DNA from: Pavona decussata
Taxonomy: Eukaryota
NCBI GenBank assembly: GCA_977016875.1
Contig: CDRNST010000101.1
Location: forward strand, 248,001 to 312,000
Direction: 5' to 3'
Length of the DNA: 64,000 nt
Shown here: piece by piece, positions 1-64,000 of the stretch
How positions within the stretch are numbered: position 1 is the stretch's first letter
How the letters are laid out: every line of letters starts with the position of its first letter
The notes under the pieces: generated by a model
Database searches by the model: none
The model's input: the letters and a program-made list of their open reading frames with translations, nothing else
Told to the model about the DNA's origin: nothing
Program-made: the position numbers and the translations under genes

Positions 1-811
1 GCAGCCAGAGGCGAGTCAATCCCTTGGCAGATCGTTCAAACATGGTGTTAAAGTGTTGGTCAATAAACGATGCAAAATATTTTGCATCCATTTTTTCTTA
101 TCTCTCGCAAATTATTACTCCTCCACCGTGAGTTATTGCTACCATCATCTTGGCAACTTTACCTCCTGTTCCGACTTTACTTCCCTTAGCCAAACACCCT
201 TGGTTTAAACCTTCGGATTTTTTTTGCCATACTCTCCCTTTGGGTGCTCGGGCTTGGTCCATGGGGTTGGTCTTGTAAATAAACGAGACCCCATCTAAGT
301 AAAACGCGATAGTGTCCGTCCAGACACTCTGAGGGTAATTTGATTGCATCCGTCTAGCAAATTCTACTCTTCTCTCTTTGTCGCTTTGACTCATTAGTCC
401 CTTTTTACGAGCCTGCAGGAAGAGGTACCCCTTTCTATTTAACAAACGCCGAACCGTTCGATCAGTGACATGACGAATTCCTGTCCGCTCCATCAGGCGC
501 CGCGAAGAAAATGAACCTTCTTGCTCTCTTAACTCTTCAATGGTTCTAAGAATCAACGCTTCGTGTTCAGGAGTGACCTTTTTCTTTCTGCCGCTCAAAT
601 GTCTCCTGCTCTCATGTACTTCCTGGTATTTTGAGCTCGTTACGCGGTGAACACTTGCTGTCGAGACCTGAAAGTGTTCGGCGATCTCATTTAATGTGAG
701 ATTTGTAGTCATCTTTAGGACTCTGACTGAAGCCTTTGTTTCGTCCGATATTCTTTTTCTCGAGGGCATGTTGTCTGAGGATTTTTCAGTGCTTTTTGGA
801 AAGTTGTGCAA
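1..811 (-). pseudogene. Tc1/mariner-like transposase with a premature stop; runs off the window edge
   Basis: ORF 98..811 has N-terminal HTH-like segments and WTDTIAFYLDGVSF (first catalytic D). The frame continues past the TAA as EKMDAKYFASFIDQHFNTMFERSAKGLTRLWL toward the second D. Confidence 0.8.
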
Positions 812-999
812 ACAATTGCGTATTTTATTTACTCTCTGTTACCAAAATATCGCACTTGTGATACCTAAACACAGATACCGCCTTCAGGTTGTGACGCGTG
901 TGACTGCGTCAGACACAGTTGATATAGCCTGATAAATGTGTTGACAAATAATCTACTAATTAGTCACTCCCTTTGTTTTGTCATGTTTAAGGCCGGCGG

Positions 1000-1151
1000 A
1001 CAATCTTGGACAGATCAAATGAAAAATTAAGACCAGCCCTCCCCCCCATTTCAATGATGGAAAAATGGCGCATTTTGCTTTGCGCGCGAATTCATCATTG
1101 AATTTGGGGGGAGGGGGGTTTAATTTTTCATTTTAATCTGTCCAAGATTGT
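1000..1151. mobile_element. Palindromic MITE
   Basis: ACAATCTTGGACAGATCAAATGAAAAATTAA...CCCCCCCATTTCAATGATG pairs with CATCATTGAATTTGGGGGG...TTAATTTTTCATTTTAATCTGTCCAAGATTGT. It sits where the adjacent MULE-like frame breaks off. Confidence 0.8.
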
Positions 1152-1152
1152 A

Positions 1153-2820: not shown

Positions 2821-3965
2821 TTAACCCATTGTCCCCTCGAGGCGTAACGCGTGACATTATGCTAATTTCCTAGAAATTTTGGAGTACAGACTGCGTGATC
2901 CAAATGCTTGAAATAAACCATATGCGCAGTAGCACTATAGACGGGATCAGGTTTCAAAGCAAAGCTCATCCCAAAGAGGAGGAATTTTGCTGCCGGAAAG
3001 TGTAAACAATTTATCATTTGATGCATGGACATATAGGACAAGGAGAAAAGCACAAATGAAATTAATTTTTTTTGTGTTTTACGCGCCGCGAGCTCCAAAT
3101 ATGAATAATTAGCGGCCGCATAAAACTGTTAAGACAGGTCATGTCAAGAACCGAAAATGGGTAAAATCACTGTTGTATACATCAAATATGAATTTTAACT
3201 GTATTTATTGAAGTTTTCTTGCAGATTCAAGGTCATTTAAATGTAGGCAAGGATAAGAGAAAGAGAGAATGACTCGAGCCGCACGAGAACTCTTCGCGAA
3301 AAGCAAAGCACAAACGCATCGCATCGCAAACAAAAACTCACGCAGCGCAAGGAACGACAAAACAAACAAGTAGAGATTCCAAACAAGTTTTATTTACAAG
3401 ATAAAGAATTCGGCAGCCAAAATCTGACAAACGACGCTAAATAAAAACTTAAATCGTGCCAAATAAAGGCCAAAATTGTGTGACCGGTCCAAACCAAAAT
3501 GAGATTCAAAATACTATATTCTACGCATCATTGAAAAACAATTTGCGGCCTGATTGCAAACTAGTGAAACGTGTCACTATTAGTGGCCAAAGGTTATTTA
3601 ACCAAGAAAAGATCTCAAATATTGATTAGGCCAAAATGCAATGAAATCGTGATCGTATATACTTTTGAAACTTACCGATAGTTCATATATGACAGCGTCG
3701 CAGATAGGGACTCGGGTTATAAAGAATGCAATTTCAAGCCGCGTGGTATTCATGAACGCAAGTTTTGCAAAGCGCTACACTACATGGTAAACACTGAAAA
3801 GTGGTCTGTACTGAACGTCCCCCACTTGTTTTTCTACCCACCCTCTTACAATGCACACAAACTCTCCTCCTACCTTCAATTTTAACACTAAAATGCTTCC
3901 CAATATTTTCTAGGGCGACCGACAAATTATCAATCTTGCGGCGCTTTGAAAAGGCGATCGAAATT
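2821..3965 (-). mobile_element. piggyBac 3' end fragment
   Basis: TTAA|CCC terminus at 2821. ORF 3734..3925 encodes the piggyBac C-terminal Cys-rich domain (H..RRRVCVHC...TTFQCLPCSVALCKTC..EYH). Confidence 0.75.
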
Positions 3966-4080
3966 TTCAGTACTGTGCACCGTGCACATGGTCCATAAAA
4001 TACTCATCGATACCAATGACATTTCTTAGCAGACATTGTAAATGTTTCTTTTGCAACCACCATCCTTCCAAAACAAAACA

Positions 4081-5250
4081 TTACTCAACCAAACCGGAGA
4101 TGACTTGTAGCTCAACAAGAAAAAATAAAATAACCCGCAACCTGAAGCTAGCATAAAAGTAGTCTTCCAGACGATTTAGCTTTAATAAAATGTTGTAGGT
4201 GGCAAGTGGAAGTGGAATGCAAGTTTCCAGAAGGTTAAGTAAAGTGCCGTATTGAAGATCCTTGCACTTATGAAAGACTGTTTTAAGTACATTTTTCGCC
4301 AAGGTCTACCCTCTATAGGTTATCTCAAGGAGAAACCGTGTGCCCTAAGGTTTGGGCTTGTCTGCGAGATTCTTGCCAAGAAAAACCGACTTGTATACAG
4401 ACCACTCAGAGGACAAAAAGTTGCTGACAATGTCTTCATCACTGTTGTAGACGACATGTAGAGCACCCATACAAGGGATAACAGAAGTGATGGGATCTGG
4501 TGTGTCTCCCTGCTTAACTAAATTACATGCCCTTTACACAATGTGACGGGGGAAGAATTGTGAGGGTCAATCCCCAGACATTAAAACCACAAACCTTGGA
4601 AGATACTCCTTTAGATGGCTTTGAGAGACCAACCCTAAGGCAGTTTTGTGGTTATTCCTGCACTTTAAAAGTAAATTTACAAAGTCAAAAAGGTGCACAT
4701 CACTTAATGATCACATCCTTCTGACAGCTGTAGAAGCATGATAATCGTGGGATTCCAAGCAATGCCTTTCCAGTACTGGATCAAAAATTAAAACAGATAA
4801 TTCTGGACCGGTTGAAACAAAATGGTTGTGAAAAAAAAAACAAAACATGACAGTTTGTTAATGTCAATGCCTACAGGGTTGTGAATTTTCCTGGGTTCTA
4901 GAGCAAGAATGGCCTTGACTTCTTTGGTGACCTTGATGATGATGGTGTAGAAATTTTACAGACACTGAAGTCCTTTCGTGTAAACTTTTGTCTAGTCATC
5001 AATCAGTAAGGTCACTAAATGCTCATTTTCTATGGTACTTTTCACTATGTCACCCAATAGAATTTTTAAAATAAAACGAAGAAATTTCTTTTTTGACCCC
5101 TCCAGAGCAGATGAAAGTACCAAGCGATCTTTGTCATATGACAAAATTTCAGGAACAGCGCATTGTCTTTCTGCAAAACATCACATTTCAAAGATAAACA
5201 AAAGCATAATTGGTACAATGAGGCACCAGTGCATTTCTTTTTGAGTTCAG
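4081..5250 (-). pseudogene. Remnant of an unclassified transposase-like family, copy A
   Basis: Fragments LVTLLIDD, VIPCMGALHV and NLADKPKP*GTRFLLEITY...CKDLQYGTLLNLLETCIPL, with stops and frameshifts. Homologous to 11249-12180. Confidence 0.5.
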
Positions 5251-6248
5251 ATCTTTTGTTGATGTGTCGGGAGGTTGAAATAAAAGCAAAAATGAAATCA
5301 AATAGATTATTTTAACCAACACTGGAGCAGAACTGGTAGAAAGCATCAGGGCCGCCCATGGAGATTCTGCCATTCTGGACAGCATTCTGAAAATCTGCAC
5401 CTGAAATGTAGCAAACAGATAATACAATCTGTTACAACAAAGTTTTATCAAAGCCTTTGAAGTCAAAATGGTGACTTGTTGTCGCAGCCTCCTTAAAATT
5501 CTGAAAGTGTCGGCTATTGTTAAAGAGAAAGTGAACCTGAAAATTTGGACCGATTGTTTTGAGTGCAAAACACATCTTCAATCCATAAAGCATGTCTCAC
5601 CTAAGCATTTATATTGAAAGGAAACCTTCCCATGATACCTTCACCTTGTACATAAGTGTGTTAAATTGTTACTGGAGTCTACCAAAGACATTTGTCATCG
5701 TTTGTTTGTGTTTGTCTTACATGTGTTTATATTTATGCCTGCATTACATGTGTTAACCTGGCCTCAAGCAGCGTCAGGTACCTGTTTGACTGAAACAACT
5801 GGTACCTAATAAGGCCACAACACATTGTATTTTTTTTAGCCCTAAAAGAGTAGACGTGTCCCAATTGTTTAAGATTTTACTCATTTACTCATCAACTGTT
5901 CGACTGTATTTTCCAGTGCAAAAGTTGACCCTACTTTTTGAGGCTAAAAGTTGGGATTTTACTTATTTGTGGTGTATAGACTAAGTTCAAATTCCTGACA
6001 GTTTTTTTGTAAAAGAGTTCAGTGGAGAAAAATATTGCATACATCGAGAGACCCACTTGGGGGAGAATTATCTTACAAATATCCAAAATTCAAAGCCATA
6101 CCTTTAACAAAGAGGTATATTAAGAAACTGTAACTTTTAGAAGATGTTTGGGAGCTCTTTATGCCAAGAAAAATGTTAAAACAATTAAAAAACACGAAGG
6201 AGCGAAGTTGAGAAAATGACCCGCTATCTTGTATGACTTAGTAACCTG

Positions 6249-6489
6249 GCCCCAGTTGTTCAAAGGGCGGATAATTTTATCCACTGGATAGGTCACGATG
6301 CGGTAGATAAAATGCGTGCAAGAAATTTGCTATAGCCGTATAATTTGTGTATAAGGTAGAAGCGTCTGTCTAATTTAAGTATGGGAGTGTGTGAAAAACT
6401 TGCGAAAAGCTTTTGTTGGAGTACATTTTATCCACTGGACAGCAACGTATCCACTGGATAAAGTTATCCGCTCCTTGAACAACTGGGGC
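6249..6489. mobile_element. PIF/Harbinger-type MITE
   Basis: TIRs GCCCCAGTTGTTCAA / TTGAACAACTGGGGC with internal TATCCACTGGATA motifs. CTG 3-bp TSD at 6246-6248 and 6490-6492. Confidence 0.85.
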
Positions 6490-6873
6490 CTGGTAATAAA
6501 AACCTGACGAGCACTGGTAACTAAAATAAATGCACGTGCTTTTGACGTAAATGAAATCCCTTCCCTCTCTACCCAAAACACTCCTCATTCAAAGAAGCCA
6601 ATCGTTTAATATATTATAAAACTATCTCTTTTACAGTAATGTTGGTGAGCAGTTCAACTATTTACATGAAAAAGACAAAGAAATGTCAAATGTTCAAATG
6701 TCAAATACAGCTAAGTCTTCTTACACTGCTCAACTATTTACTGGCGAACTTTAGTAAATTTAAGACTTATAAGATGGAATTTCAATGTCTAAAAGCCCTC
6801 AAATTCTTCCTCCTGGTCACTCTCTCCAAACAAGTCGCACCACTGTTCCTCTGTTAGTTTGTCATCGTAAATG

Positions 6874-7210
6874 TCACACGTCCTCCATTTCTTCATCTTC
6901 ACTGCCTTCAGCTGCAACAAGTTCCTCTTTCTCGTTATCCCACAAGATGTCATCTTTGGTTCCGTCTATCGCATTCGAAATAAGGCACTTCTTAAGTGAG
7001 CAAGAAACCATCTCTTGGGATAGCTCTTCCCATGATTCATCGACCCAGGAGGAGACAGAACTTAGTGAAGGTGCCTTGATGTTACCGCCAGCTGTGAAAC
7101 TCTTCTGACCCTCAATCATCCACATGGTACACGTTTCATGAAGGCGATCTTTAAATGGCTTTTTCAGGCTGACATCAAGCGGCTGTAACACACTGGTAAG
7201 TGCACCAGGT
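6874..7210 (-). pseudogene. pogo/Tigger-type DDE transposase C-terminal fragment
   Basis: LQPLDVSLKKPFKDRL...W...TAGGNIKAPS...WVDESW...SLKKCLISNAIDGTKDD is a typical DDE_1 tail. Confidence 0.85.
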
Positions 7211-9469
7211 TCACAGGCGAGACTTCAATACAAACACTGTTATTTCAAGACGCATTTGCCTACCCATCAAAATGGCTTCAAAAACCATGATAAGGTCTAT
7301 TAGCAGAGTGTCACTACAGTATTAAAGGAGGTCCTAATTTAGTTTTCATGGTTTGTTCTTCCTTTTTAATGTAAGTTTTATTAGCATCACTATATTAACA
7401 AAGAAAGGAGATAATAAAAAGATAGAAACAGAGAAGTAAAGCAGCGACTCGAAGGATCAGTTTAACTTATTTTGGCTTAGTGGCATTGAAATAGGCCAGG
7501 AAACCAGAGAATTATTCAGTTTTTGGGTATCTTTTGTTTGGATTCATTGTCATGTGAAATATCTTGCTACCATTCATGTAGGGCAAATTTGTTGAACATT
7601 GCTGTCTCAGAGTTTATTTACAGGACATTAAATCTAGCACCTGGGCAGAGGAAAGGGAAAAATTCTTTGGAATAAACGAATTTTCTTTGATTGTTATTAT
7701 TGTTTTATTAGTTCTTGTCATAAAGTATTGGTTTTACAGCAGGACCAAAACGGCGGATATTATTTTCCAGCTTCAACTTTAGCAGAAGTGAAATAGGTTT
7801 TTTTCTGACAAACCTATTTTTGTTTGAAATTACAGTGTACCTTATTAAAATATAAATGTTATCATATTCATCAAGCTAAGCAAACTGGATTTTATTTTGT
7901 AAACTTTTTCGCGCAGAAATATATTTTTGCACTTTTTCTGAATACAATCATACTTTTTTTTCTCGACAACCCTTGGAAACTTTACACAATAATATTGTTG
8001 TTAGTAGGAGCTGTACTTAGTGCTCATATCTACTAGATCCTATTAACATCATGAAAGCCATACAGAGAGCAATAGATATCCTGAGAATTGAATTTTATTT
8101 AAGCTTTTTGATGAAATTGGCAATCTTTGTAAAAGCTTAGCACGCAGCCTGTCCACATTTTTAAGAACTCCCTTGTCAACATGTGTACCACCATCAACGA
8201 TTTTAAACGTAATGATGAGATGTTAGTCGTGTTATTTGTGTAGTTACTGAAAGGGGAAAAAATTTGGGTGAGGTGGCAGGGGGGAGCATAACATAAGTCA
8301 TGAATATCAGTAAATTGTGAAACTGTTTCACTTTACATTTTCTAATAGTAAGAAAGTAGTATAATCATAATACTCATGTAACAGAAGTGTCAGAAGGGGG
8401 CTGCAAGTTTTTTGTTATAACTTTGGGATAACAAATGTGCACAAACATTAGTTTTTATGTGATCATTCTGTGGAAATTGACAAGTGGTTGCTTATAATTT
8501 GGATTAGCCATTAAAAGAGGGTTTGTCAAAAATACAAAAATACATTGAGATTTCTGACAACTTTTGCAGAAGATACAAATTATTGTGTCACTCACAAAAT
8601 TAATGGAAAGTTTCACTGATAATTGTCACAAAAGTAGGTATTCTGTTGTTAAAAAATGGTCATCAAAATAGCATTGTCTTAACGAGAACCACGCAAGAGA
8701 AGCTGATATTAATTAAGCATGATTCAAAGCCAATTCCACAAAAATATTTGAACACGGTTCATCCTAATGAGACATTGACAAAACATTGCTAATGAACGTG
8801 TGCTAAATTTTTGGCCTTCACTTGAAGCAGTGGTATAAAGAAGGCCACAAGTCTCATAGATGAACCAAAATAAAAGTTGTGGTTGATTGAATGTATATTC
8901 CAGAACAACCAGAATAGCTGTTAGATTTCCCCTCTTCACTGGAACACGATAATTTAAGAGTGATTTTGTACTGCAGTAACTCCAAAACCTCTTATGAGGG
9001 ATTTCTTGTCATCATTGTTTGTATTGCTATTATGGAATAGGGTCAATCAAATACAACTTAAAACTGGTCACATCTACATACATGTAATGGGTATATTAAT
9101 TGCTTGGGTCATAACTGACCTATGGTGAATTTAATAAATGTTTGTAGATTTTTTTAATGGGGTCTTTAATTCCTTCAGGAATCCTTGCCTCAACAATCCG
9201 TCTGCTGTATTACCCTTTGTTTAGGAATAAAAGTACAAAAATTGCTTGTACTCATTTTTTTTTTTGTAGTTTGAACTTAAATACACTTGTTCAGTTTATA
9301 GGCAATTTATATAGTTTTTTATATAAAAAGAAAAAAAAAACAGAGGGTAAAACACAAGATTAAATGTCAAGGCGATGCTTCCTGGAAGAATTGAAGGCCA
9401 AATCCAATCCACAAGGACAAACTATTTTTTGAAAGGCCATACATGTATAATCTTTTTAAGCAAGCACAG

Positions 9470-9590
9470 GGGCCGTACTACGAGAATATCGGTTTGAGGT
9501 CTTGATAGGACTGAGTGTAGCGACGTCTGTACAAAAAAGACTGAGGGCCAATATTCTCCCAGTATGGCCCTAGCGCTTGGTAGATAATAG
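9470..9590. mobile_element. Short palindromic non-autonomous element
   Basis: GGGCCGTACTACGAGAATATCGG pairs imperfectly with CCAATATTCTCCCAGTATGGCCC. Confidence 0.55.
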
Positions 9591-11248
9591 ATTCATTACA
9601 CAACTGCAAAGAACTTTCAATGTGTTATATACAGTATAACATTTCATTACAAAAATGGTTGAGATGTGAAGAACACTAAATTATTCAGTACTGATTGAGG
9701 GCCTACCATGTGTTTCTGCAGGAAAAAGGATTTTTTTACTACTTAACTACATTACATAGTTTTGGGGAAAATTTGCATTAAGTAATCTACCCATGCTATT
9801 TTTTATCACTGAATGATTCAACAGCTTTCTCTTGCCTGATTGAAGGCCAGCAGCAGAAACAACGTCTGACAAAAACTACATGTAGAGTGTAGCCCATGCA
9901 GCTGATTTTTACCCAGTGGTGAAGATCATTATCCACCATCTTGATTTCAAAAATGAAGGCGGGACACAACGCAAGATCATTGAGGACAATACCTGGGTAA
10001 AAAGAGCAATGTGATTGTTTAATTTTATTAAATGGCCCTTTCACTGCCTTAGTCATGTAATAAATATACTGTAATTATTATTTAACTGCTTTGCTTGACA
10101 CGCAAAACTAATAATCATGACTAAGATGTATCATTTACACTTATTAAAATGATGGATGTAACAAAAATTTGAAAAGTAGCTTGGATTAAATTACATTCAC
10201 AGAAAGAATAATCACTTGTAATTAAGGATGTAAACAGCATGTGAGAGTGCTGGCGGGTCATCACATCTAGTCAAACGAATGCCATGGCTTTTCACATGGA
10301 GGCCAACATTAAAATTCCACCCCAATGCAGGAACAACTTGCTAACTAAATTGCACAGGTGTGGTGTCCTCCATCCCAGTATGTGACAATTCGAAGATGAT
10401 ACCTTGATTTGTTTTCGTGTTAAGTGGATACTAAGGTAGATTTGAGTTGGCCAGGCTAATTTTCCTGTAAGCCACCGTTGATTTGAGAACATTTGATGAA
10501 GAGGTAACAGGGTTCGGGTTCCCTCATAGGGCAGATTTAAAAACGATTTCAGAAAATCAGTTGGAAAAACAAAGTAAGTGAAATGTGATCAGCAAATTGT
10601 TAATGGGACAAGAATTGATAATCTCGATGTTTTTGCCCTCATATGAAAACTTTCCTCCCCAGGGTTGTACAGGAACTGTAGGCTGTGACACGGAGTCTTT
10701 TCCCTTTTTTTCTGTTTTGTGTTCATTTGCAATGAAATTTTTCTCTTAACCCGTTTGGCGTTCTGTTGGTTTCTCACCACAACATTTTTCTAAGAATTCT
10801 ACGATGGCCTCTTTAGCTCTAAAATTCCACCAACAACAAGACATGGGAGCACGACTTCCTTTCTTTTCGGGTATCTGATGGCCCTGTTTGGATTCTGGAG
10901 CTGGCTGTGGATGAACGCTTGGACCGACAGCACTGGGGGTGTATTTTGGCCACGATCTTATTTCAGCATTTAATCAGTGGGACCTCTCCTTGACATCCTT
11001 TTCATTTACGTTTGGTAGCCCAGCTTTGTTTTCTTATCACTTGTATCTTACGTATTCTCCGAAGGATTGGTTGCGGCCCTCCCTTCTGTTTGTAATTGTG
11101 AGAAGATGGTCTGTTTTGCTTTGCACATATTTTCAGGAACACAACAGGGAATGCCCTCTTGACATGTTGGGCATGTTCAGTTTGAACACATGTTACGTGG
11201 AATCAATGGCCACATCCTTGAAATACTCACCAATTGGGATCTTGCTCT

Positions 11249-13313: not shown

Positions 13314-13793
13314 TTAGCTCTTCAGTAATTCAATCATGAGCTGTGCTCTCAGCTTTGGAGATTCCTTATAAGTTGATGTGAATTTTTCCTGGATGCCATG
13401 GCTTAAGTTGCGAACACAGTAAATGACACCCACTCCGCAACTGCCTGAGCCATTTGGTTGATCCGGGATAGGCACTGTGAACCTTGATACTTTGCTCCAG
13501 GTCCTTGGCAGAAAGTGTTGCAGAGTTGTTATCCCGTACAAGTTTGCTAATGTCTTGCCATTGCAGTGAATGGGAATAAATATGGTCTCAACTGTACTCA
13601 GTTCGACATTAACATTTAAATTGTAAACTGCACTTGTTAGAAACTGTGTCGAGACATCGCTTGGAAGCATGGCAAAGATTGATCTGCCAAAAAATTCATT
13701 AGCAGCATCACAGTACTTTCGTATCAGCACGTTTATGATTTCATTGGTCAAGTAGCATTCGCAGCACAAAGCAGACACATCCTGTGATGTTAT
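13314..13793 (-). pseudogene. Ulp1/SENP (peptidase C48) domain, displaced C-terminus of the P-like gene at 16761-21500
   Basis: YLTNEIIN, TIFIPIH and IPDQPNGSGSCGVGV (Q..C catalytic motif). Joins in frame to 16761 (GQSKGYTI|TSQDVSAL). Confidence 0.75.
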
Positions 13794-13805
13794 ATATACA
13801 TACAT

Positions 13806-21500: not shown

Positions 21501-21509
21501 TTGTTAGAT

Positions 21510-41800: not shown

Positions 41801-41828
41801 TGGTATTTCTTTCTCAACAATAAGGGTG

Positions 41829-49820: not shown

Positions 49821-49841
49821 GTCAAGATTCCTCTTCTTTAA

Positions 49842-52800
49842 AGGGAAAGTGTCACAACTACTGCGCATGCACTGGTTTGCCATATGCAAATGAGGTAAAT
49901 ACTGTGAGGTGCAGAGGTGGATTTCATCGCAATGGTAAACAGTGTTACAGTAAGGTCCAGTAAGCAGGTTTATATCAAATTTAGAGAGCAGATAAAGGGA
50001 AATTGTAGTTCAACAGAATTATTCGCCTTTTCTTTTGATATTGCCACCAATCTCGTCGCCTTTCAGGATAACACTTTACTTTTAATCTCACCAGGGAAGT
50101 AAAGAAAATTTCTGCCAATGAAAGAGCACCCAGCAGGAAGAGGGCCAGTTGTCGATGTAAAACAGCTGGGCAATTTTGCGGAGAGTTTTGTTCATGCAGT
50201 TGGCGAAAACCATGCAAGAACCAAAAGGAGACCGAAGACCGCAAGGTCAGTTTTCCTTGTCTGTCACATAACCAAGTCGGGAAACAGTTAACTAACATTA
50301 ATTAATACTTTGGACCTGTATATTAAGACTGCAGTTGAAGTGCCTCCACCAGGCTGGAATGTCATCAAAGATCCGCCAAACCCAGAAAGTCTGCACAAGG
50401 AAGAGGAGAGGGATGCAGGGAATTAGCGAGTGAAAGCATGGTTTCACACAAATGCAGCTGTAATTATTTTCTCAATTGTGGTGTTATAGTTATTGGTCTA
50501 GATTCATAATTCTACTACCGACTCTCTTTAGGCAAATTGAACAGGGTGCAATGCTTGCATCTGTAAAATATGGAGAAGGTAGTACCAGGACGTAGTACCA
50601 CATTTAAATAATATATAGTGAATTTCAATTTATAGTCTTTATCCCAAACCATCAGTTCTTATCAGTTTGAGGAACAAACATCACAATATTCGTTATTCTT
50701 CAAAAGGGTTTTCAAGAAATGACTATTTTATGTCACTTTATGCAGGGAAATTAGAGTGGTTTGCTCTTTCATTTATGTTTATTTTAGAAACAGATTATTA
50801 CATCACTGCTTTAAGATTCAAAATTTCTCTTCTTTTGTTTAAACATTATTCATTCATTCACTACAGTCACTCGTGAAACATTTTCATATAGGTGCATGGC
50901 CATGTATATCCTCTCTCTATGTAGTCAATTATGGTATGAAAATAATAAACCAGTGACTTGTTTCCTTGAAACTGTCAGGAGTTTGTTCACACCCTGGATG
51001 AGGCCACATCCAAAAAGCTTGCCATAAGGGCATTGCAGCGGGGAGTTAGCTGCATGGATTATATTAACGTGCTGTTCATCATGGAAGACCCAGACGAGGA
51101 GGGAAGCCCATCTACCTCTGGAACCACGGAAGAAAATTCAGTGCCTCCCGCACTTAGTACACTTTCTGGAGAAGGCTCACACCAAAGATTATTGGCTGCT
51201 GCTAGTGCTAGTCTTGGTGCTTCAATTCAACCACCACCTTCATCAACCCTTGTGCGTTCTACAAATAAACAGGTGCCAGAGTGGTGCAAGTGTGGACACT
51301 GTAGGGAAATGCCCCAAGAAAATGCAAACCTTTGCTGCAAATCTAGAAACTGTGTTTCCCTTAGCAGAAGGTTTACAAAGTTCTCCCTTGATAAGGGTTT
51401 CCTTCAACTCAGTATCAAGAGTACTTGTAACATGAGGAATGATTGACAAGACAACAGCAGCAGAGCTTTCCGCAAGGCAGCATACCGCCACCACATCCTA
51501 GAAGAGTATGGTTACCTAGGCAAGCACAAGCGTAGAGTGTGTCCATCATGTTGTGTGTGGAAGATTAGAGAACATATTCCATCATCTACCAGGGCCTACA
51601 TGGGTTTCAGATCTCATTAACTTTGGCATTCAACAGATTTATTTGAAACACTTGCATGAGCAAATCATTGTGCTATAATTTGAAAATTAGTAGTTTTTCT
51701 TTATTGTAACATGAATATTTGTTTACGGAGGTCCTACACGTGATCTACCACAGTTCACTTGACATGTGTACAATAAAGACCCTACGCATGCATGGTAGAC
51801 CCCTATAGCCCTGTTTTATTTCAGAAAATGTGATATTCCTTAGAGATGTTTCCTTCTGTCAATCCTACAATTTATTATTCATGTCTACAAAATATTCATG
51901 TTGAAAGCAGTAATATCACATAGTTTGACATGGGAAAACAAGATGTACAAGCTAAAAAGGTCTATTGGAATCTTCTAGTATTCATGTAAATTATAGTCCA
52001 ACCAGCCTTATAAAAAGGAATAAGAAATAAACTAACTGAACTCAACAACAAGACTATTTGGGCTAATTTACAGGAATACAGAGAAAACCAATCGCACTTG
52101 TGTTGCAACTATGACATCAATTCCCGATGCATATTTTTCAACTTATAGGTGTCGAGCATGACCTTAAAAAGTTATGAAAGTGGAGGATAAATATAGTCAC
52201 TCATTTAATTTGTTTGAAAATCTGCTTTTGTGTTGCTGAAAAAGCTCTCTTGAGGTCGGTGGTTTAACTGCAGTAATGGTGGGGGCAATTCTTCTTGTGT
52301 CGTCAGATTCCATTGTCAGTACTCGTTGGGCATTGTTCTTATCTTCCATGTGAAGACGGAATACCTTGTCTATAAACACACATATGTAGCCATAGTCCTT
52401 GACTTGTTAAAGAACTTTTACATTCCAAGTCTTAGTTCGCTGAGACCTAATTAATATAAGCTTCATAGTTTCCTTTAGGTCTCCTCGCCATTGTTACATC
52501 TATTTTTCTCTATTTTTTTTTTGTTTACATTAATAATGTATTGTGGTGTGGCAAAATAAATATAAATAAAATTAATGAATTGTATTTTTGGGAGACAGCT
52601 ACCTCCCCACAGGCATCTGTAGACTCTGGAATGTCCACATGGTAATTCCAGTCTATAGCAGCCAGTTGTTTTCTGGTTTTATAGATCTTCTTACTAAAAC
52701 ACAAATATGAAAAACAATATAAAGAGGGAAAACAATACATCCCTATGTATAATGAGGATGTAGATTTCCAGAAAACAGTAATAAGAAGCAGTTGGGTAGT

Positions 52801-53620
52801 TATTTCTCATGATCCCATTATAGTTATATGCAATATACTCACAATATTGGCTCATTGACAAGTATCTGTATGACTTTCAGTGTCGTTGAGCAGAAACGTA
52901 TAAAGTAGATACACATTAAATTGATGGTTACTTGCAAGTCCTCTGGTCTCAAGCACACATGACAGAACATGTCAGAAAAGTCTCCTGAGAGTGTATCATA
53001 CTTCTCTCAAGGAAGTCATTGAGGCGGATCCTGTCATGCTTTGAAGCAGAATCGAACACAACTCATGGTATAGTGTTCAGGCGAGATGACTGGGTGTTGT
53101 GGCAAAAACCAACATTCTTCATCCATCAGACGTTCTGCTCCGACAGTTTACATGCAAACCCCTTTCCTACGTATGCATCAATTCCTTTTCTAAACCTTCA
53201 GCTAACTTCAGCTCTCACTGTAGGCGACACTCAACAGACTCTAAACGTTTCAGGGCAACTGTATCATAGTTGACAGGCAACAGCAGTTGGTCGGCCTTCC
53301 CCAGGAGTCCCAGACACCACTCGGCAGCATGTTGCGTGTCCATTGCTCTCTTCTCACTGTGTGTGTATGACGGAGCTGTCTCCACTCAAACATCAAATGA
53401 GTCTGTCCAAGAACTTGCGCAGTTGCTGGCTGACATCCTCCTCAGTCTCCAACACTTGCACATACAGGATGCGCTTTCCTGGACCACTGGTGGTTGCTGA
53501 GGCTGGAATGGCAACCAACCTAGTGGCATTAACTTGGCATACTGCTCTGTGTGCTCCCCACGTCTGACTTCCACCAGTGCCATAAAATTTACAATGTCTA
53601 GACCCAGTAAAACATCCACT
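49842..53620 (-). mobile_element. Degenerate Kolobok element: transposase on minus, accessory gene on plus
   Basis: TTAA|AGGG terminus at 49838-49845. Transposase C-terminal remnants YKTRKQLAAIDWNYH...KDYGYI and RRIAPTITAVKPPTSRELFQQHKSRF (52197-52690). Right boundary approximate. Confidence 0.6.
50110..51620 (+). pseudogene. CXC + P2X7-ballast/nanor-like (KolX-type) accessory gene
   Basis: Exon SCRCKTAGQFCGEFCSCSWRKPCKN ending at a GT donor near 50245. Later PEWCKCGHCREMP...LCC and, past a stop, AFRKAAYR...GYLGKHKRRVCPSCCVWKIR..PS....YMGF. Confidence 0.75.
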
Positions 53621-53699
53621 GTTTAATCACCAAATGCAAATGCGCATAGCATTGCTTGACTTCTGGCCAGTTAATAGCCTCCACAGGCTCGCATATGTT

Positions 53700-55394
53700 C
53701 TTGAGTGTTGACTTAAAGTATTTTGTGAAAAACTAAAAACATGAGGCTGCATGAGGCTGGCATAAATTGCATTTTTCATTTTTGACAGGTTGCCAACATC
53801 GCTCCTGATGGCTCTGCCATAATAATTTTGGAGCCTGTCAATCATCCTGTCTGTCAGCTTTCCTTTTCCACCCGTACCTTTTTTCTCTTTCTTAAGTTTC
53901 CTTAAAGCTGTCCCCACACGCTTTTGGACATGTCCAAGACATTCTTTCTTTACAACTTTAAGTCCATTGTCCATGTAAGTGTTCTCTACTCCATTGAAGC
54001 CCTTACTATCCCCATCCCCATAATATTCAGTGTATTGCAATTTATGCCTTTCTTCGCTCCTGTCAAAAATTCGCTTCACCCCCTCTGTTTCCATTGCTGG
54101 AGCTGAGCCTTTAAAATTTGCTTTGCATCTTGCTGCGTGGTTTAGTTGCCACTCCTGCTCTGCTTGCAAGTCATTGCTGGGCTAATGCCTTTGACAGGTC
54201 TGACAGACTTTGTTCAGTACTTCGACATCAAGGCATTTGCCGGTATCAATGGACAGTACTGCAACACAGCCATTCAGTGATGAATGTCCCCTTTTTTGCC
54301 AAGTTCCATCACAAGAAACCCCAGTTTGAAAATCCATTCAGATCTTGACCATTCAAATTGTGGGTTTCTTTTTTGACATCATTCATGGTCTTATTTGCCA
54401 CAGATTTGGATGCTTTGAGCAATGCTTTGTTGTGTTTACTGTATGCCTTTGGTTTTGGTGGAGGAGGCATGTTCTTAATTTCACAAAATCTCTTGGCTGA
54501 TGCTTCCCCTTGCCCAATTGTTCTCATTCTATAATCAAGTATTCTGTTAACCTCATAGAATCTAGAAATCTTTTTTTGACAAGTAAAATCAATGATCCCA
54601 CCCACAACTCAGACATAATAAACTAAGACAGGATGCACTGCCATGCCTTCGAAAGGATATCTCAGAGAACTGAATGTTTTGCTCACCACATTCTTGACAA
54701 CAAATAAGGCTGAACACGTTAGCCAAAATTTCCATATCTATCAAGCGATACCCAGTCAGGTTGCTGCTGCCAGTTTGTTCTTTTTTGTCTCCCTTAGCCT
54801 CAAGTTTGGGTCCGATTTTCCGTTCTGAGGCGGACTGATTGCCTACGGTAGTTGCTTTTATGCTGATCGCCACATCTTCGATTTTCTGTGATTTTGTAGT
54901 TCTCTGAGTATGCTGATTCCCCTGGAACTTGCGTTTACGAGATCTATGGCCAGTTCTAGCCATCAAATCTAAAATTTTTGTTGAAACTACAAAAGAAACC
55001 TAAATTTAACTTGAAAGAAAGTGAAGACAGCACGTTTCTCGATCGAAAGCAAAATTGTCAAATTATTTTTTGCCAAAGCAATAATACGGCCAGCGGTTAT
55101 AGCCACAAGACCTTAAATACGTCATATAACTATCACAGAGTATGTTGCCTTAGGAAAGAGTCCCAGTTCCTTTAAAATTTTGGAACAAAGAGTGTAAACA
55201 ACCGTTGCTAAGGGCGTTTCTAAGGCAAAATAATTGGACAGACGAATAGTTTTGACAAATTATGTCTTCGTATGACATTTTTCCCCAAAAACACCACGGA
55301 ATAATGTAAGAAATGGTTAAAGTGTCCACTTATAGCATTTTTAAAAAATCGGCCAAGTGTACAAAAAATGCGATTTTTAGGGTATAAGACCACC
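53700..55394 (-). mobile_element. Second Kolobok (Mutator-like transposase domain), 5' portion
   Basis: TTAA|GGTGGTCTTATACCC terminus at 55398. GYRLIDMEIL..C..C and YEVNR, then C.ANFKGSAPAMETEG...YYGDGDSK...KECLGHVQKRVG...LQNYYGRAIR. Confidence 0.85.
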
Positions 55395-57339
55395 TTAAAT
55401 GTCCCCACAGATTCTTCGCAGTTCCTACACATATCAAGAACAAAGCAATATGCTCGCAACTTTGTGGCTCTTCTTAATTAGGCTATTGTTCCTGTCTGTT
55501 GAATTTGCTTCTTGGTCTTCCTGCAAAGTTCTCGCCTTTTCTCAATCAAGCTGAAACGAACATCATTCTTCATGGCTGCCAAAGTGAATGCCCAAAGGAA
55601 TAAAGAGACCCTTTGTGCAATAAAATCCAGCAGAGTTGCTTATTTCTCGATGGCACGCTTGAATTGCATGAAATTGTGATGTGAACACCCATAAGCAGCT
55701 AAATAGTTTTTTACGTCCCATCAATGGTTTCCTTTATTTTTGAACGAAAATTCCATGCAAAGGAAAACCAGTACATGCGGCTCAGTTAGTGCCTACACTG
55801 TAATACAACTATTCAGGAAACTTTGTTACTCTTTGAGTTTTGCTTACTTGCTTGTATTTTTAATCTCTAAGCAACAGTTCTTCTTTTTCCTCTACACTAG
55901 TCTGGGAAAAACTTTTTGTGTCTTGGTAGTCTATTACCTTGTGAAGGGGTGTTACTAAACAGAGTAACGAAGTAACGAGAAACGAGTAACGGGAAAAAAT
56001 GACAGGGTTAAAAAAAATTTAAAGGTAGAGAAAATTAAAAATAAATCAAATTACAGATTCTTTTAATTTAGGACACAACAAAAATAGAAATGTGACAGGG
56101 AAGCATTTTTTAATATGTCCTGTGACCAAAACAGGTCTTGCAAAACGGGAGTGCAAAGATTTTTCACATTGTTTTGAATGCCAAGACAGATGCCTGAGAG
56201 GAAAGGAGGCTGTTCCCCACTCATGGGTTATGGAAGTACAATTCTGTTCATTTTCTGGCCCTGTGCGACTTCTGTTGAACGTTTTCCCTGTTACTTGATC
56301 ATCGCCTGACACAAACTGATAATCGGTAAGGCTTGGGGGAAGGTAAATCTCTTAGCTAATATTTTGATGTAGGAAGTATGCATTACAATGAAGAGTATAT
56401 GTAGTGGAAAAATGTTTTTGATGATAACTTAAAGCAGTTAGCTTCCCAGCACATCGATATTCTAAAAACTATTCAGACATTCTTGGAAATTTCAATGTGA
56501 TTTAATTCCTTGTCATTTAGTTTTCATACATTTGTCTGTGAAGCCTATATTAAATGAAATAAATTCAGCGCACAGAGGTTAACAGAATGATTTATAGAAT
56601 TCAAATGAAAAGTCGACTAGTATTCATGTTTTTGAATATAGTTAGACCACTTTTCCCAGATTTTATAGATAAAATAGTTTACTTTAAGCTTTAGCCTTGA
56701 ATATAAGCTTAAGCCTAAGCTCATTATGCAAAGATTGAATTTTACAGCACAAGATCAAGACATGTTTTTGTCTTGCACAGACTAGTCGATTTTCAGTGAA
56801 ACTAAGCTTCCGTTATTTTGACACAAAGGCACTTTAATTTCCTTCCCTTCACTATTGCTGTCTAACATGATGATTTGGGTGATATCGGAAACATCTGGAA
56901 GATTTAAAAAGACAATGAGCCGTAATGCAGGTCAACAGGGATGTAAAATGGCCAGAAAATCATCAAAGTATTGTCTCGACATTCCTTAAGAAGCAGTCAA
57001 AAGGTTACTTCTTTCTCTGTTGTCGTCATTAGTGTAGCTATCCCTGTAGTCAAAACCAAGCTGTGCAAAAAATGGTAGAAAACCTTTGCACTTAGACTGT
57101 ACCTTCTGCTACAGAAGCCATGATCCCATGTGCTGAGAAAAGTGACTACTCTTTTGATCATTTGCCATTATGGGACAAAAATACCTTGTACAATCAAGAA
57201 ATTAAACAAAGCACCCTAAAACGGTACTTGTATGATTCTTATTTCTGTTATGGGTAACTTAATGAAAAGAATCTGTAAATTTGATTTATTTTTAAATTTC
57301 TCCATTTTTAATATTTTTAACCCTTTAATTTTTTTCCCA

Positions 57340-58130
57340 TTATTCGATATTTCGTTTCTCGTCGGTCATAACACCTTACATGTAGTAGCAAAGAAAAGTG
57401 AATTCTTATTTTGAGCTCCGCAGTTGTCCGCATGAAGTTGCACTTCTGTCCCATGCAGTCCATGGCACTGGAAGAAGTAGTGTACATACGAAATCAAACC
57501 ATTGGCACGTATTCCAGTTATCACATCTTTGTCAATGAGAAAATTCACCTGTCTAGGTATAGCTTTGCAGCAAACATCAAATATGGCGCATTCCTGTGGG
57601 GTAAATAGGCCCTGGCTGATTTGGATTTGCAGGATAATGTTGGTGGTAAATACGTTCATTCGATGCCAGACAACAGTTCTTATAAATATCCCTTTCTCCT
57701 GTGGCGAGACTTTTTGAACTTTGGGTAGATTTCCAGTTTTCTGAATTAAATATCTGTTTCTCTGGCAAGTCTAGCATAAGTCTGTGGCAGGTCGAATAAT
57801 TACAACAAAAGGGCGAAGTTGATTCCAAAGATCACAGAACTTCTAGTATCTGACAGAGTGTTGGCCCTGGCTTGTACTGATTTCTGTATGCATTTTTTAA
57901 AGGCCATGTTTAGTTAAAACTGATGGCAGCAATTTAACACCAACTCTTTTAAGTCCAGGTACACGTCCAGGGAGAAGGAGCGCTTGCTGTTCAGCGATGT
58001 TCATAATAAAGTTAACTACTTGTTCTACAGTTTCAGCAGAAAATGCACTACTCGGAAGTCACTGCTTGCTTCCATGCAGACGCAAAGTCAGTCCGTTCTT
58101 CCTAAGTGTTTAACAAGGTTACAGAATCTG
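57340..58130 (-). pseudogene. Sola-type transposase remnant
   Basis: LHG..., AEQQALLLPGRVPG.K...KLLPS, NPNQPGPIY, IPRQVNFLID...ANGLISYVH...LHADNCGAQNKN. Confidence 0.75.
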
Positions 58131-60162: not shown

Positions 60163-60899
60163 TGTGCAGTTCCAGAAAATATCCATACCCCCCACGGATG
60201 TTTTTTTTATTTTAACCCCCTACCCCCTCGGAATGTCCGTTCCAGAGGGTTTATGATCAACCCCCCACCCCTCCGGAATTTCCCCATTTTTAAAACCCTC
60301 TTTCCTGAACCCCTCGGAAGTTCAAAATCCATTTAGACTAAGAAAATTGACGACTCACACTATTACGGCCAATTTTTGTAAATTATTGAAGCAATGTCGA
60401 CTACTCTAGTTTAACTATTTACAACACTTTGCTATATTACTTGTTTATCCTTTTCCAAAAATTATATAAAAAAAAAATTGGAAAAAATCTAAAATGGTCG
60501 ATCTTTTACGTCAATAAAACACGGCTTAATTCTTTGTTGTTGCGTAGTTTACGTTTATAACCTTCTTGAGCGCTTAAGAAATTATAATCTCTATCACGTT
60601 ACAACTTTTCTTTTTCACCTAAAAACGACGGCCTTAAATTCCATTTTCGTTATGATTACCTCTGCAGAAAAACGTTTGCTATTACCGCAAAGAAACTGCT
60701 ATGAATATAAGTTGCACATTGAATATACGATGCTGGATTTTAATTTATCAAGTAGAATTTGAAGAACTTTGAAAACCCAGTCGAAAACTGGCTGCATGCA
60801 CAAGAGTTGAAACTCGCCTTCAATTTGTAAACAGTTTCACAAGGTTCTCCTTTAAAAAATTCAAAATTAATTAGCCGTGGAGTTAGTCTCGGCACTTAA

Positions 60900-62724
60900 A
60901 GGGATACTCTAGCCCCCAAAACAACTTTCCAAATTCAAAAAGCTTATGACCCAAATAAAAGATATTTACCAAATTTGGAGTTCGATCTCCGCTATTTTGC
61001 CTAGAAAAACGAAAAGTTTCTCGCCATGGGATTCGAAGGAGCGCTTGGGCCGAAAACTGGAAATGACGTAGAAAGAAGAACTCGCCAAACCTTTTCCGGT
61101 TAGATTCCTCTGGATTTCTTTAGCAAGATTCGGTAAATGGCTTGATTTTAAAATTCCAAAATAAAATGTATAGTTCGTGTTTTGAGGAAAATGCAATAAT
61201 ACCGTATCGATTTATGGTTGCTTTATGCTCAATTCTAGTAACAACGGTAAAGGTCTTAATAATTCGCATTTCTTTCGGGTTTTGTACGGGTGGTTCGGAC
61301 ACACGTGATTCGATTTGTTTACTAACCCCACGACTTCTGCTCACTTTTCTGAAGGCTGTTCTCAACCACAAATTATCACAGCTGTGTCTGTGGAAAGATA
61401 AAAAGCTCACAAAACGCCATTTCAATCTTGTTTTAAAGAAGGACTATCAGAAAATAAGAGCATAGGCCCGGTGGAGGACAGCACGTCCAATGAAGCCGCT
61501 CGCGCGAGACAGATTGCAAAACAAGCTACTCCACCAGAACTAGCTAGGGTTCACTGTATGTTTGAAAAATAATAAGAAATTGTTATTGCAGTGCAGCCTG
61601 AAGAAAACTAGCATTAGCCGATAATGATACTTAAGCTTACCTTTTGAACACGCGCAGTTATTTCATTAACCTTGTTCAGTTCAGGTACGCGACTCAGTCA
61701 TATATATTCGCTGTATCCACGGCGCGACAGGGCAAAATGACCAACAAAGGTGAACACCGGTTTCTAAATCAGCATAATATCAAAGGTAAAGGCCTTATTT
61801 TGCTTTAAAATGGAAAACAACGAAAAATTGCCAGTATCATTACTTAGCGGAACAAATCTCTGTAAAGTGAGCTCGGATGCGGTATTAATAGAACGCAATA
61901 TGCAATATGGAAGGAAAGGTATAAACTCGTTTAATGTCCCAAAAGGCCCAGCACAACACAATGACTTCCGAATTTATTTATGGGCTTAGACTTTGTCATA
62001 GTATTGCTGTTTGTACAGGTACCGCTCCTGTAAAGTGTGAATCGTTATAATGAAAGCTGCCCACATCTCCAAGCTTTCGCTGAACTTTGTACGCTGCGTC
62101 TCTAACGGGCGAATTCCCGGGGTAAAATTTACGTGGATTTTTTTAAAAAATGTAACTAAACTGGATTTCAAATAACAACACCGTACCATAAAAAGGAAAC
62201 TTTAATGCTACTCAAAACGTATTCAATCGCCAATGAAATCTCATTGCTGATGTGAAATACACCGAATTTGCGATAGAATGCATAACTGGTCGCTTACCAA
62301 TCCGCTCTTAAACACCTCTTCGCACTCGTTTTGTAGAGTCCGTAACCGAGTTCACTTCGCTGTTACACGGCTAAACACATACGACAGAGCGCCTTCATAG
62401 CTCTGCTAACATAGCTCCGTCGGCAATTTCGATTGTACTATTTTGTTCAGAAGAAAAACAAGCAAAAGAACTGCGCTAATCCCCAGAATCCATATTCTCT
62501 TCAGTGTTGTAAACAAGAGCGGTTCTTCATTCTACGTCATCGATCACGTGCTTCACTAAAGACGATTTTTACTTCCGGTCTTCAAAAAGGGGAAAATTTC
62601 GCCTTTCTCCGGCAATTTTCGGCCTTTTATTTGTTTCTTTTGAACTTTTTGTGCCGTTTACCCTTTATTATAGTCCAAATGCTACCTTTTAAGCGAAAGT
62701 TGTTTTGGGGTCTAGAGTATCCCT
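60900..62724. mobile_element. Non-autonomous Kolobok (1.8 kb)
   Basis: 30-bp TIR AGGGATACTCTAG(C/A)CCCCAAAACAACTTTC with one mismatch. TTAA TSD at 60896-60899 and 62725-62728. Confidence 0.9.
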
Positions 62725-63409
62725 TTAATACTTATCTCTGTACTGAGTTCGTGAATGAAATGAATTCGAGAAAGAAAAGAAATTTGTGCTTTCAACATTT
62801 TATGTCAGGTTTTTATCAAATAAACTTCGCTGTTACACGTCCAACAGAATTCAATCTTGAGCAAAATTTGCATCCATCGGGAAAGTTTGGGTTTAGTGCC
62901 ACGGAATCAAATTTCAACTGCAATGTTCGTCAATATTAACTGGATGGAAATATCTCAGCAGAATCTTTTCCATTTTTTCCAGAAATCTTTTTTGTGAAAG
63001 ACTGGGGCCGCGGTAAAATAATTTTCCGTGGGAAATAAATTCATCAACCGGGACAGGGCTGACAGCACGCCCATTGTACATTTCATCGGGTCAGAAATAG
63101 ATCTCAACCGCAAACTAGCCTGTGGAACTACGAAAAGACCATGCTCATCAAAATAGTTGCTCTGTTCAGAAACCTTTTTAAATCCTCATTTGGTGCTACA
63201 ATACGAGTAAAGAGAGCTTTTACTTATTTCAAACTCGAACTTCAAATGATTGTGAAGTCACAGCCATGCATGGCATGATACAAGGCTGATTGATCGCGCC
63301 GCGAAGTCGAAGTTGAAAGAAAAATACCTGTCTCACACTACTTTCGCTTATCAGAAGGATTAACCAGACAACACTTCTACTATAAAATTGACTTTTTCCA
63401 GAATGATTC

Positions 63410-64000
63410 TGTCATAAGACTCGAGTCGAAAAGCGACGAGTGAGCGGGTTATTCCAAAGTTCAATGTATGAAGTTCTAATGAGCATACGTGTCACGCGTC
63501 ACGCATAACATCCTAACGTGACATCTCCTCTTCTAAGACAGTTCGAAAATAAACGAGGTTCTAACAATTAAACAAGGTTCAAACAGTCCAAAGGTTTTGG
63601 GCGTGTGACTACAAAATCACCCAAAGGTTCTTTTAGTTTAAACTTGTAGTCAGTTTGACGGTGTCACTATACAGTTTCAATAAGACGCTGTGGTGGTCTT
63701 CGGACCCGTAGACTTCTTCTGATGGGTTGATTCGTTTGCGGGATATCAGGCTGTGATTCCATCTCTGGCGTTTCGATACCAGCATCAGTGTTTGGCTGCA
63801 TACAAGGATTTGACTCATCACTGGCTACTGTTTCCCATGCTGGGCTTGGGGCTGGCGATGCCTCTTCCTTGGTCGGCTGAAGATGGAAACGGTTTCGACG
63901 CATCTGCTTTCCATCTGGGGTCACCACAATGTACGAACGAGGAGTCTGGTGTTGTTGGACGACCACCGCAGGTGTCCAATCCCGTCCCCACTTCATTCGC
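63410..64000 (-). mobile_element. Gypsy/Ty3 LTR retrotransposon 3' end
   Basis: Pol tail WTPAVV...PRSYIV.TPDG..RRNRFHL...RRSLRVRRPPQRL. Polypurine tract AGAAGAGGAGA, then LTR TGTCA...TGACA (63523-63410) containing AATAAA. Confidence 0.85.

Follow-up and report, generated by a model that had tools for sequence, protein, structure and literature searches.

The closest described counterparts of the locus considered here are flamenco and the flamenco-like (flam-like) piRNA clusters of Drosophila, which extend over more than 100 kb of nested, truncated transposable elements (TEs) lying mostly on one strand (PMC10643416; FlaHMM, PMC11400887). In flam-like loci only Gypsy-family LTR elements account for the bias, and the loci are enriched in Gypsy/ERV sequences; in Drosophila, genuine unistrand clusters have been identified by scanning genomes for strand bias (van Lopik et al. 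2023, PMC10643416). Loci of this type measure hundreds of kb, are TE-dense and lie away from centromeres and telomeres; Pol II transcribes them from one end into a long precursor antisense to the TEs, and abundant 24–31-nt, 1U piRNAs arise from a single strand (PMC10643416). In anthozoans, as far as the portions of the literature drawn on here extend, a one-strand architecture is normal: 402 of the 457 piRNA clusters of the sea anemone Nematostella are unistranded (PMC5731801), and reef corals have 47–107 piRNA clusters per species, enriched in LTR and DNA transposons and with a TE density lower than expected (PMC13343488). These cnidarian clusters were defined by small-RNA mapping, and the co-orientation of TEs inside them is not described in the relevant portions of the two reports (PMC5731801, PMC13343488).

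The stretch of DNA that was analyzed, hereafter the window, is 64 kb of the anthozoan Pavona decussata (contig C101, positions 248,001–312,000; positions in nucleotides refer to the window and those in kb to the contig, unless another contig is named). A sequence-only reading had counted ~21 transposon fragments on the minus strand and 2 on the plus strand, with a naive binomial p of ~7e-5. Symmetric ORF and Pfam scans bear out the existence and the direction of this one-way orientation but not the tally: about half of the transposon calls were left without verification by the Pfam scan, and once the remains are collapsed to independent insertions there are ~10 elements on the minus strand vs 1–2 on the plus strand, so that the two-sided binomial probability becomes 0.012–0.039. 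Pfam support was absent for both Sola pieces, both pieces of unknown family, the MULE, the Zn-finger piece, the G2E3-like piece, the retroposon tail, the second Kolobok and the plus-strand EnSpm-like piece; among these, the own-genome search covered only the ORF taken as one Sola piece.

The Pfam scan took in all stop-free frames of at least 75 aa on both strands of the whole window. Matches were found in 16 minus-strand frames, and a single plus-strand frame gave a credible match (P2RX7_C). Among the frames of 75–109 aa, Pfam matches were found in none of the 54 on the plus strand, whereas on the minus strand six family matches are spread over no more than six of the 51, two or more of which were identified. 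Counted from stop to stop, the window has 34 ORFs of at least 120 aa on the minus strand and 9 on the plus strand; the corresponding counts are 17 and 4 for a minimum of 150 aa, and 9 and 0 for 200 aa. Several of the plus ORFs mirror, in antisense, the GC-rich coding regions of BEL and hAT. The youngest inserts of the window (Tc1, P-like, BEL, hAT-OTU and Gypsy) lie on the minus strand in all five cases. The bias appears on each side of the assembly gaps (Table 1), with 6:0 on the left, including a weak RT-like piece, and 4:1 on the right; no repeat linking the two sides of the gaps was found.

Table 1. Features of the 64-kb window (window coordinates unless stated otherwise)
Position	Strand	Feature	Evidence
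1–1151, ORF 101–838	-	Tc1-like DNA transposon, right part	HTH_32, HTH_Tnp_Tc3_2
3737–4003	-	piggyBac-type C-terminal zinc-finger fragment	zf-Tnp_2 E=2.4e-5
3978–14603		10.6-kb composite segment, duplicated	96–97% on C382 2436791–2447410, opposite strand (own-genome DNA search)
6877–7224	-	pogo-type DDE_1 transposase fragment	DDE_1 E=1.4e-5
11923–20827	-	Large P-like composite element	Chromodomain ORF 17671–18120, Chromo E=4.9e-5
21773–22371		49-bp tandem repeat array	TRF
24499–24834	-	HIRAN-domain fragment, captured or pseudogene piece	HIRAN E=1.2e-5
27942–30064		Two assembly gaps and 1.4-kb island without orientable feature	N runs 27942–28510, 29929–30064
30206–30664	+	153-aa ORF of repeated family, possible plus exception	No Pfam match
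31252–39548	-	BEL/Pao LTR retrotransposon	LTRs 31252–31702 / 39098–39548, 96.9% alike
42084–47464	-	hAT element	ORFs 43827–45197, 45502–46404, 46263–47201; Atlas matches to hAT dimerisation families at 0.95
50970–51443	+	P2RX7_C-domain ORF, sole Pfam-supported plus coding piece	E=6.6e-9
53630–54999	-	Mutator-like transposase remnant (earlier called Kolobok)	Mutator E=3.3e-31, 9.8e-8
62415–62936	+	174-aa ORF, two abutting short repeats	No Pfam match
63670–64000, on to contig 315.4 kb	-	Gypsy LTR retrotransposon start	RT_RNaseH, Integrase_H2C2, rve, RVT_1

Several elements in the left part of the window have relatives elsewhere in the genome. The Tc1-like element has at least 40 scored copies at 97%, many of them in 2.57-kb tandem arrays. 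Two pieces interrupt the P-like composite, a 1.25-kb TIR element (~13791–15070) that is 95% identical to other copies and a piece with a weak RT-like ORF (16218–16760, minus; RVT_1 E=0.006); copies of the composite on contigs C352 and C289, at 88–93% identity, are without 13794–16760. The name P-like goes back to the sequence-only reading and received no confirmation from Pfam or from a PDB sequence search; PDB sequence searches with five minus-strand ORFs (P-like, RT-like and Baculo_FP-like) gave no matches. The minus-strand ORFs at 21937–22728 were set aside as artefacts, the second only partly so, because they overlap the 49-bp tandem array.

In the right part, the BEL element carries DUF5641, Peptidase_A17 and DUF1759 domains at 31847–36576 (minus; Pfam). 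What had been called a separate L1 is a Baculo_FP-like ORF (37801–38469, minus) that sits between the two BEL LTRs and is therefore not independent. An ORF at 39561–39983 (minus) is of ambiguous coding status by own-genome protein search. The hAT element contributes zf-C17orf113 (E=1e-8, in 45502–46404) and a weak OTU match (E=0.0046, in 46263–47201), and the two Mutator matches (53630–54181 and 54312–54608) are consecutive segments of one profile and thus one element, with a related copy on the same strand at 164.1–165.1 kb. The repeated family of the possible plus exception at 30206–30664 has more than 100 genomic relatives at 35–92% identity, four of them with intact 150-aa frames, and its coding status is ambiguous. 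The plus-strand ORF at 62415–62936 was rejected as a gene: its halves (residues 1–110 and 104–174) match different repeat families, and the open frames of the copies run to ~100–150 aa.

The window belongs to a TE graveyard of ~165 kb (roughly 156–324 kb) and is its most strongly biased section; in the flanks the same orientation is weaker. Flank ORF blocks number 17 minus vs 7 plus at a minimum of 130 aa and 10 vs 2 at 180 aa, and by Pfam-supported elements the flanks are minus-leaning at only ~8:4. Over 156–324 kb as a whole, 27 ORF blocks lie on the minus strand vs 10 on the plus strand, homology-supported independent elements number 17–18 vs 5 (p ~0.01–0.02), and the minus strand holds roughly 75–80% of the orientable TE remnants. 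With ~9,400 such windows in the genome, a bias at this level of significance is not rare, which, like the modest ~8:4 of the flanks, counts against a piRNA source. The next 88 kb (324–412 kb) are equally TE-rich, with ORF blocks balanced at 10:10 and each strand bearing long intact ORFs. The bias is due to DNA transposons (~11–12 minus vs 2 plus), the carriers being Tc1, piggyBac, pogo, P-like, hAT, Mutator-like, Crypton and DUF7869 elements; the minus-strand retroelements of 156–324 kb are BEL, Gypsy and another LTR element. The two Gypsy elements lie on opposite strands, plus at 221–226 kb and minus at 311.7–315.4 kb. Internal duplication is scarce by self-comparison, so the insertions are largely independent; in 264 kb compared with itself by blastn and tblastx there are few internal relatives, and independent pairs of non-coding repeats are ~7 in the same vs 6 in opposite orientation. 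The order and orientation of 31698–55314 are identical at 100.000% in two other public assemblies, which are evidently of the same genotype and do not represent independent individuals.

Set beside the described systems, the locus resembles flamenco and the flam-like clusters in its size (over 100 kb), in its truncated TEs, nested in one another and lying mostly on one strand, and in its normally mixed neighborhood, no host gene being detected here, and the same strand-bias reasoning applies. The term flamenco-like, used in the sequence-only reading, does not hold in its strict sense, since the Gypsy enrichment and Gypsy-driven bias that define such loci (PMC10643416) are absent. In contrast to flamenco, DNA transposons carry the bias, the two Gypsy elements are opposed, the bias is moderate, not extreme (~75–90%), and the genome is not that of an insect. 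A one-strand source would be in keeping with what is normal for anthozoan clusters in the published portions cited above, although those clusters were identified from their small RNAs and this locus from DNA. As in introns, where TEs are preferentially antisense to the transcription unit, there would be a preferred orientation relative to a transcript, but here no gene or flanking exon was detected for the 165 kb in a Pfam scan of ORFs of at least 110 aa, which would miss short exons, and the poly(A) hexamer is not depleted on the putative sense strand. Heterochromatic graveyards and dual-strand clusters such as Drosophila 42AB share the dense mosaic of old and young TEs and the paucity or lack of genes, but they show no marked strand bias; 324–412 kb behaves in this way and the window does not. 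Overall, the structural precondition of a uni-strand source, a gene-poor array of diverse truncated TEs mostly on one strand, holds in a weaker form.

Footprints of transcription were sought both in expression data and in base composition. Thirteen RNA-like runs contained 0.00–0.02 of the words of 47501–57500, a negative but weak result from runs of unstated tissue and library type. Among RNA contigs from four runs of four studies, 23 of the 30 bins of 47501–53500 were empty; these are contig data in which strand is unreadable. The contigs that do match are short, 90–95%-alike pieces running on into unlike sequence, and by this comparison they appear to come only from other repeat copies. The plus strand is richer in AATAAA than in TTTATT (186 vs 149 in 156–324 kb; 80 vs 54 in the window). 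No asymmetry was found in poly-A vs poly-T runs or in TG/CA (ratio 0.997), GC and AT skews gave no footprint of transcription and no compositional skew switch, no promoter-like CpG island was found outside the BEL element, and searches for tRNA/SINE heads and with Rfam found nothing. The AATAAA excess on the plus strand, the even TG/CA ratio and the lack of a promoter-like CpG island outside BEL speak against a piRNA source, as does the failure to see a transcript in these RNA data.

The reading we favor, tentatively and as one real possibility among several, is that the region is a candidate uni-strand piRNA source locus. A transcript of the plus strand would run antisense to the TEs, as these lie mostly on the minus strand. 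In such a scheme transcription would start from a promoter at ~156 kb or farther left and give a long precursor of plus-strand sequence; TE copies inserted against its direction would be a source of antisense piRNAs and would be retained, and the unit would stop near 324 kb, at the change to a balanced orientation; the region would thus be, or have been, a uni-strand source of small RNAs. The points in favor are the ~10:1–2 element count, the flanks that lean alike, the balanced neighbor at 324–412 kb, the scarcity of internal duplication, the minus orientation of the five youngest inserts, and the unistrand clusters of Drosophila and Nematostella. The transcript, its direction and piRNA production are all inferred. 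Because the Tc1 element, the nested 1.25-kb element and the P-like element have relatives elsewhere at 88–97% identity, these families could be targets; the 96.9% of the BEL element is an LTR-to-LTR value within the element.

Almost as likely is that the arrangement arose by chance, as a neutral TE graveyard near a contig end in which sampling noise, the selection of the window and repeated counting of single elements produced an apparent bias. Verified independent elements amount to only 10:1–2 in the window and 17–18:5 over 165 kb (p ~0.01–0.04), and several calls collapse (the L1 into BEL, two Mutator matches into one, some ORFs into a tandem repeat). Merging neighboring ORFs removes most of the significance; merging ORF blocks across wide gaps was dropped as a test because same-strand merging pushes the counts toward equality. 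The near-even orientation of the non-coding repeat pairs and the lack of a transcript in RNA-like runs (47501–57500) and RNA contigs (47501–53500) are likewise what chance would predict. Regression to 50:50 would, however, be expected in the unselected flanks, which lean to the minus strand (most clearly among ORFs of at least 180 aa), and the bias stops abruptly at a neighbor just as rich in TEs.

That abrupt end near 324 kb, together with TEs antisense to a putative plus transcript, is equally the geometry of a long plus-strand transcription unit unrelated to piRNAs (for example a very large intron or a long non-coding RNA), from which sense TEs would be purged because they bring polyadenylation and splice signals. 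We regard this as improbable: no host-gene Pfam domain was found in ORFs of at least 110 aa over 148–324 kb (short exons would be missed), AATAAA is enriched on the plus strand and not depleted, RNA contigs on 47501–53500 show no pre-mRNA-like coverage, and the bias is carried by DNA transposons. Ordinary intronic antisense TE bias is, moreover, probably weaker than that seen here. Still less probable is some unknown cause on the side of insertion or chromatin, such as targeting by replication direction or contig-end structure. In another assembly the locus lies in the last ~130–300 kb of a 2.9-Mb contig, which would fit a special chromosomal neighborhood, but there is no compositional skew switch, and to our knowledge no mechanism co-orients more than ten unrelated superfamilies of both cut-and-paste and retroelements.

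The locus is best described as a co-oriented TE graveyard that is a candidate for a silencing role. It is rather unlikely that it is one of dozens genome-wide, in a non-bilaterian (anthozoan) genome furnished with flamenco-style antisense TE traps of more than 100 kb made mainly of DNA transposons and not of retroviruses; in that case the antisense-trap architecture of uni-strand piRNA clusters would be of much greater age and generality than its Gypsy-specific form in insects suggests. Should a genome-wide null absorb the bias, the lesson would be that by-eye counts in single 64-kb windows overstate significance and that element-level collapsing and an empirical background are needed. If, on the other hand, small RNAs confirm the piRNA source, co-oriented TE traps would be predictable from sequence alone outside insects. 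Such traps would then act on cut-and-paste transposons as well as on retroelements, and the encoding of piRNA immunity in an early-branching animal would become directly accessible.

The coding capacity of the window lies largely on the minus strand: stop-to-stop ORFs of at least 120 aa number 34 minus versus 9 plus, those of at least 150 aa 17 versus 4, and those of at least 200 aa 9 versus 0. Chance would give about 3 per strand at 110 aa or more, and several of those on the plus strand are antisense shadows of GC-rich coding sequence in BEL and hAT. A Pfam search of every frame of at least 75 aa on both strands returned the matches tabulated below; among frames of 75–109 aa, none of 54 on the plus strand had a Pfam match, and six family matches fell in at most 6 (at least two identified) of 51 on the minus strand. 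A 49-bp tandem array at 21773–22371 (about 12 copies) is stop-free on the minus strand and creates spurious ORFs of 120–143 aa; the minus ORFs at 21937–22728 overlap it and were discounted as artefacts, the second only in part, and a 174-aa plus ORF at 62415, two short repeats fused, was rejected as a single gene.

Pfam matches in the window
Feature	Position	Strand	Remark
Tc1 HTH domains	101–838	minus	
piggyBac zinc finger	3737–4003	minus	
pogo DDE_1	6877–7224	minus	
RT	16218–16760	minus	weak match
Chromodomain	17671–18120	minus	
HIRAN	24499–24834	minus	
BEL/Pao domains	31847–36576	minus	
Baculo_FP-like ORF	37801–38469	minus	
zf-C17orf113 and weak OTU	45502–47201	minus	adjoin hAT transposase confirmed by protein atlas
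Mutator-like	53630–54608	minus	
Gypsy pol		minus	extends past window edge
P2RX7_C ORF	50970–51443	plus	sole credible plus-strand match

Not all of these are independent. The two Mutator matches are consecutive segments of one profile, and the Baculo_FP-like ORF, which the sequence-only reading had counted as a separate L1, sits within the BEL LTR pair (31252–31702 and 39098–39548, 96.9% alike). Other copies of the so-called P-like element lack the RT-like piece at 16.2 kb, which is therefore a separate insertion. About 10 minus versus 1–2 plus independent elements have tool support (p = 0.012–0.039), so that the direction of the 21:2 bias first reported is upheld by ORFs and Pfam but its size is not: roughly half of the 21 minus calls, and the EnSpm-like plus call, found no support (Pfam over all; own-genome protein search for one candidate Sola ORF). 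PDB sequence searches covered other ORFs (P-like, RT-like and Baculo_FP-like) and returned no hits.

The window (G000:C101:248001-312000) belongs to a contig of 431,955 bp in a 602-Mb assembly; GC of 39% and CpG o/e of 0.69 would fit an anthozoan genome. The bias claim rests on scaffolded orientation. No repeat joining the two sides of either window gap was found in the sequence, but the minus bias is present on each side separately (left 6:0, weak RT-like piece included; right 4:1), and the claim is thus independent of continuity across the gaps. Order and orientation of 31698–55314 recur base for base in two other public assemblies (ENA ERZ25073805 ctg132524 and ERZ25073751 ctg102088); identity to the locus is 100.000%, indicating the same genotype, so the match validates the assembly and not the biology. 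The 2.9-Mb contig from these assemblies ends about 265 kb away from the locus, so the biased domain is near an assembly-breaking region.

Beyond the window, 100 kb per side were analysed (148–248 kb and 312–412 kb of the contig). The minus excess spans about 156 to about 324 kb, with 27 minus to 10 plus ORF blocks of at least 130 aa and 16 to 2 of at least 180 aa, one plus-strand Gypsy at 221–226 kb being the clear exception; 324–412 kb is equally TE-rich, with intact ORFs of 860–1,260 aa, and its strands are balanced (10:10 and 6:6). Flank Pfam matches on the minus strand comprise Mutator-like (4 ORFs), two RTs, Crypton (DUF3504 and tyrosine recombinase), DUF7869, THAP and SWIM/MULE, and on the plus strand one Gypsy, a Merlin/IS1595 transposase and a Harbinger DDE. 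Across 165 kb, homology-supported elements number about 17–18 minus versus 5 plus (p ~0.01–0.02), and since self-comparison revealed little internal duplication except LTR pairs and satellites, the insertions are largely independent.

Several elements merit separate mention. Just right of the biased domain, 340–392 kb carries apparently intact TEs on both strands (ORFs of 918, 817, 975, 1,250 and 859 aa), including BEL- and Gypsy-related ones (tblastx), a much younger, unbiased population. The Crypton-like ORF (DUF3504 and Phage_integrase; 201.8–203.2 kb, L006:3843-5172 in a stretch of the flank, minus) adjoins a QRICH1-like domain ORF. At least four further contigs (C305, C58, C78, C347) carry 97% copies of the Tc1-like element (window 1–1151) in head-to-tail arrays of 6–10 or more units with a period of 2.57 kb; for a DNA transposon, such tandem amplification is unusual. 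Segmental duplication moved part of the TE array to another contig: window 3978–14603, 10.6 kb composed of several TE fragments, has a 96–97% duplicate in opposite orientation at G000:C382:2436791-2447410. Nested in the P-like element is a 1.25-kb element (13791–15070) whose terminal inverted repeats are 43 bp long; contigs C118 and C221 carry 95% copies of it.

Could such co-orientation be chance? An imbalance at the verified level is not rare among the roughly 9,400 such windows of the genome, and chance keeps about a third of our belief. The strongest case against it is out-of-sample: the flanks, which the sequence-only reading had not used, share the minus lean without regression to 50:50 (17:7 ORF blocks of at least 130 aa, one-sided p ~0.03, and 10:2 of at least 180 aa, though just ~8:4 by Pfam-supported elements), and the bias halts at a boundary, 324 kb. 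Co-orientation is more likely than not a real regional property. Transcription through a domain is the established cause of domain-wide TE co-orientation; some unknown orienting cause seems quite improbable.

A uni-strand piRNA precursor would retain antisense insertions because they supply silencing piRNAs, and the region is a tentative candidate for such a source, a reading about as probable as chance. Alternatively, sense insertions could be purged from an ordinary long transcription unit; another plus-strand unit of this kind is rather unlikely, and for a plus-strand intron the plus strand's richness in AATAAA over its complement (186 vs 149 in 156–324 kb; 80 vs 54 in the window) speaks against selection to avoid premature polyadenylation. 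TG/CA asymmetry left no footprint (ratio 0.997), and no CpG-island-like promoter was found outside the BEL element. Thirteen RNA-like runs from the same species (contigs; tissue not stated) contained 0.00–0.02 of sampled words of 47501–57500. With the contigs of four runs, each from a different study, 23 of 30 bins of 47501–53500 stayed empty, and the matches were only 50–160-nt pieces, 90–95% alike, at 48.5–49.1, 49.5–49.7 and 52.44–52.5 kb; these contigs run on into unlike sequence and are therefore transcripts of other repeat copies. All runs are contigs, in which strand, transcript starts and small RNAs are not visible, and this transcription evidence is negative but weak. In each of the four RNA-like runs, contigs of great abundance (word depth as high as ~680) match the short repeats at 48500–49100, 49530–49700 and 52440–52560 at 90–95% identity; these repeats belong to highly expressed families, with transcripts coming from other copies.

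Size, Gypsy enrichment and an exclusively Gypsy-driven strand bias define flam-like clusters (PMC10643416). The locus spans about 165 kb with a moderate strand bias, but its two Gypsy elements lie in opposite orientations and the signal comes from DNA transposons, so the flamenco-like label first given to it does not apply in the strict sense; it could nevertheless work as a uni-strand cluster. Uni-strand clusters predominate in Nematostella, a sea anemone (402 of 457; PMC5731801), and are catalogued in corals (PMC13343488), and a cluster here, if confirmed, would thus join an already known type.
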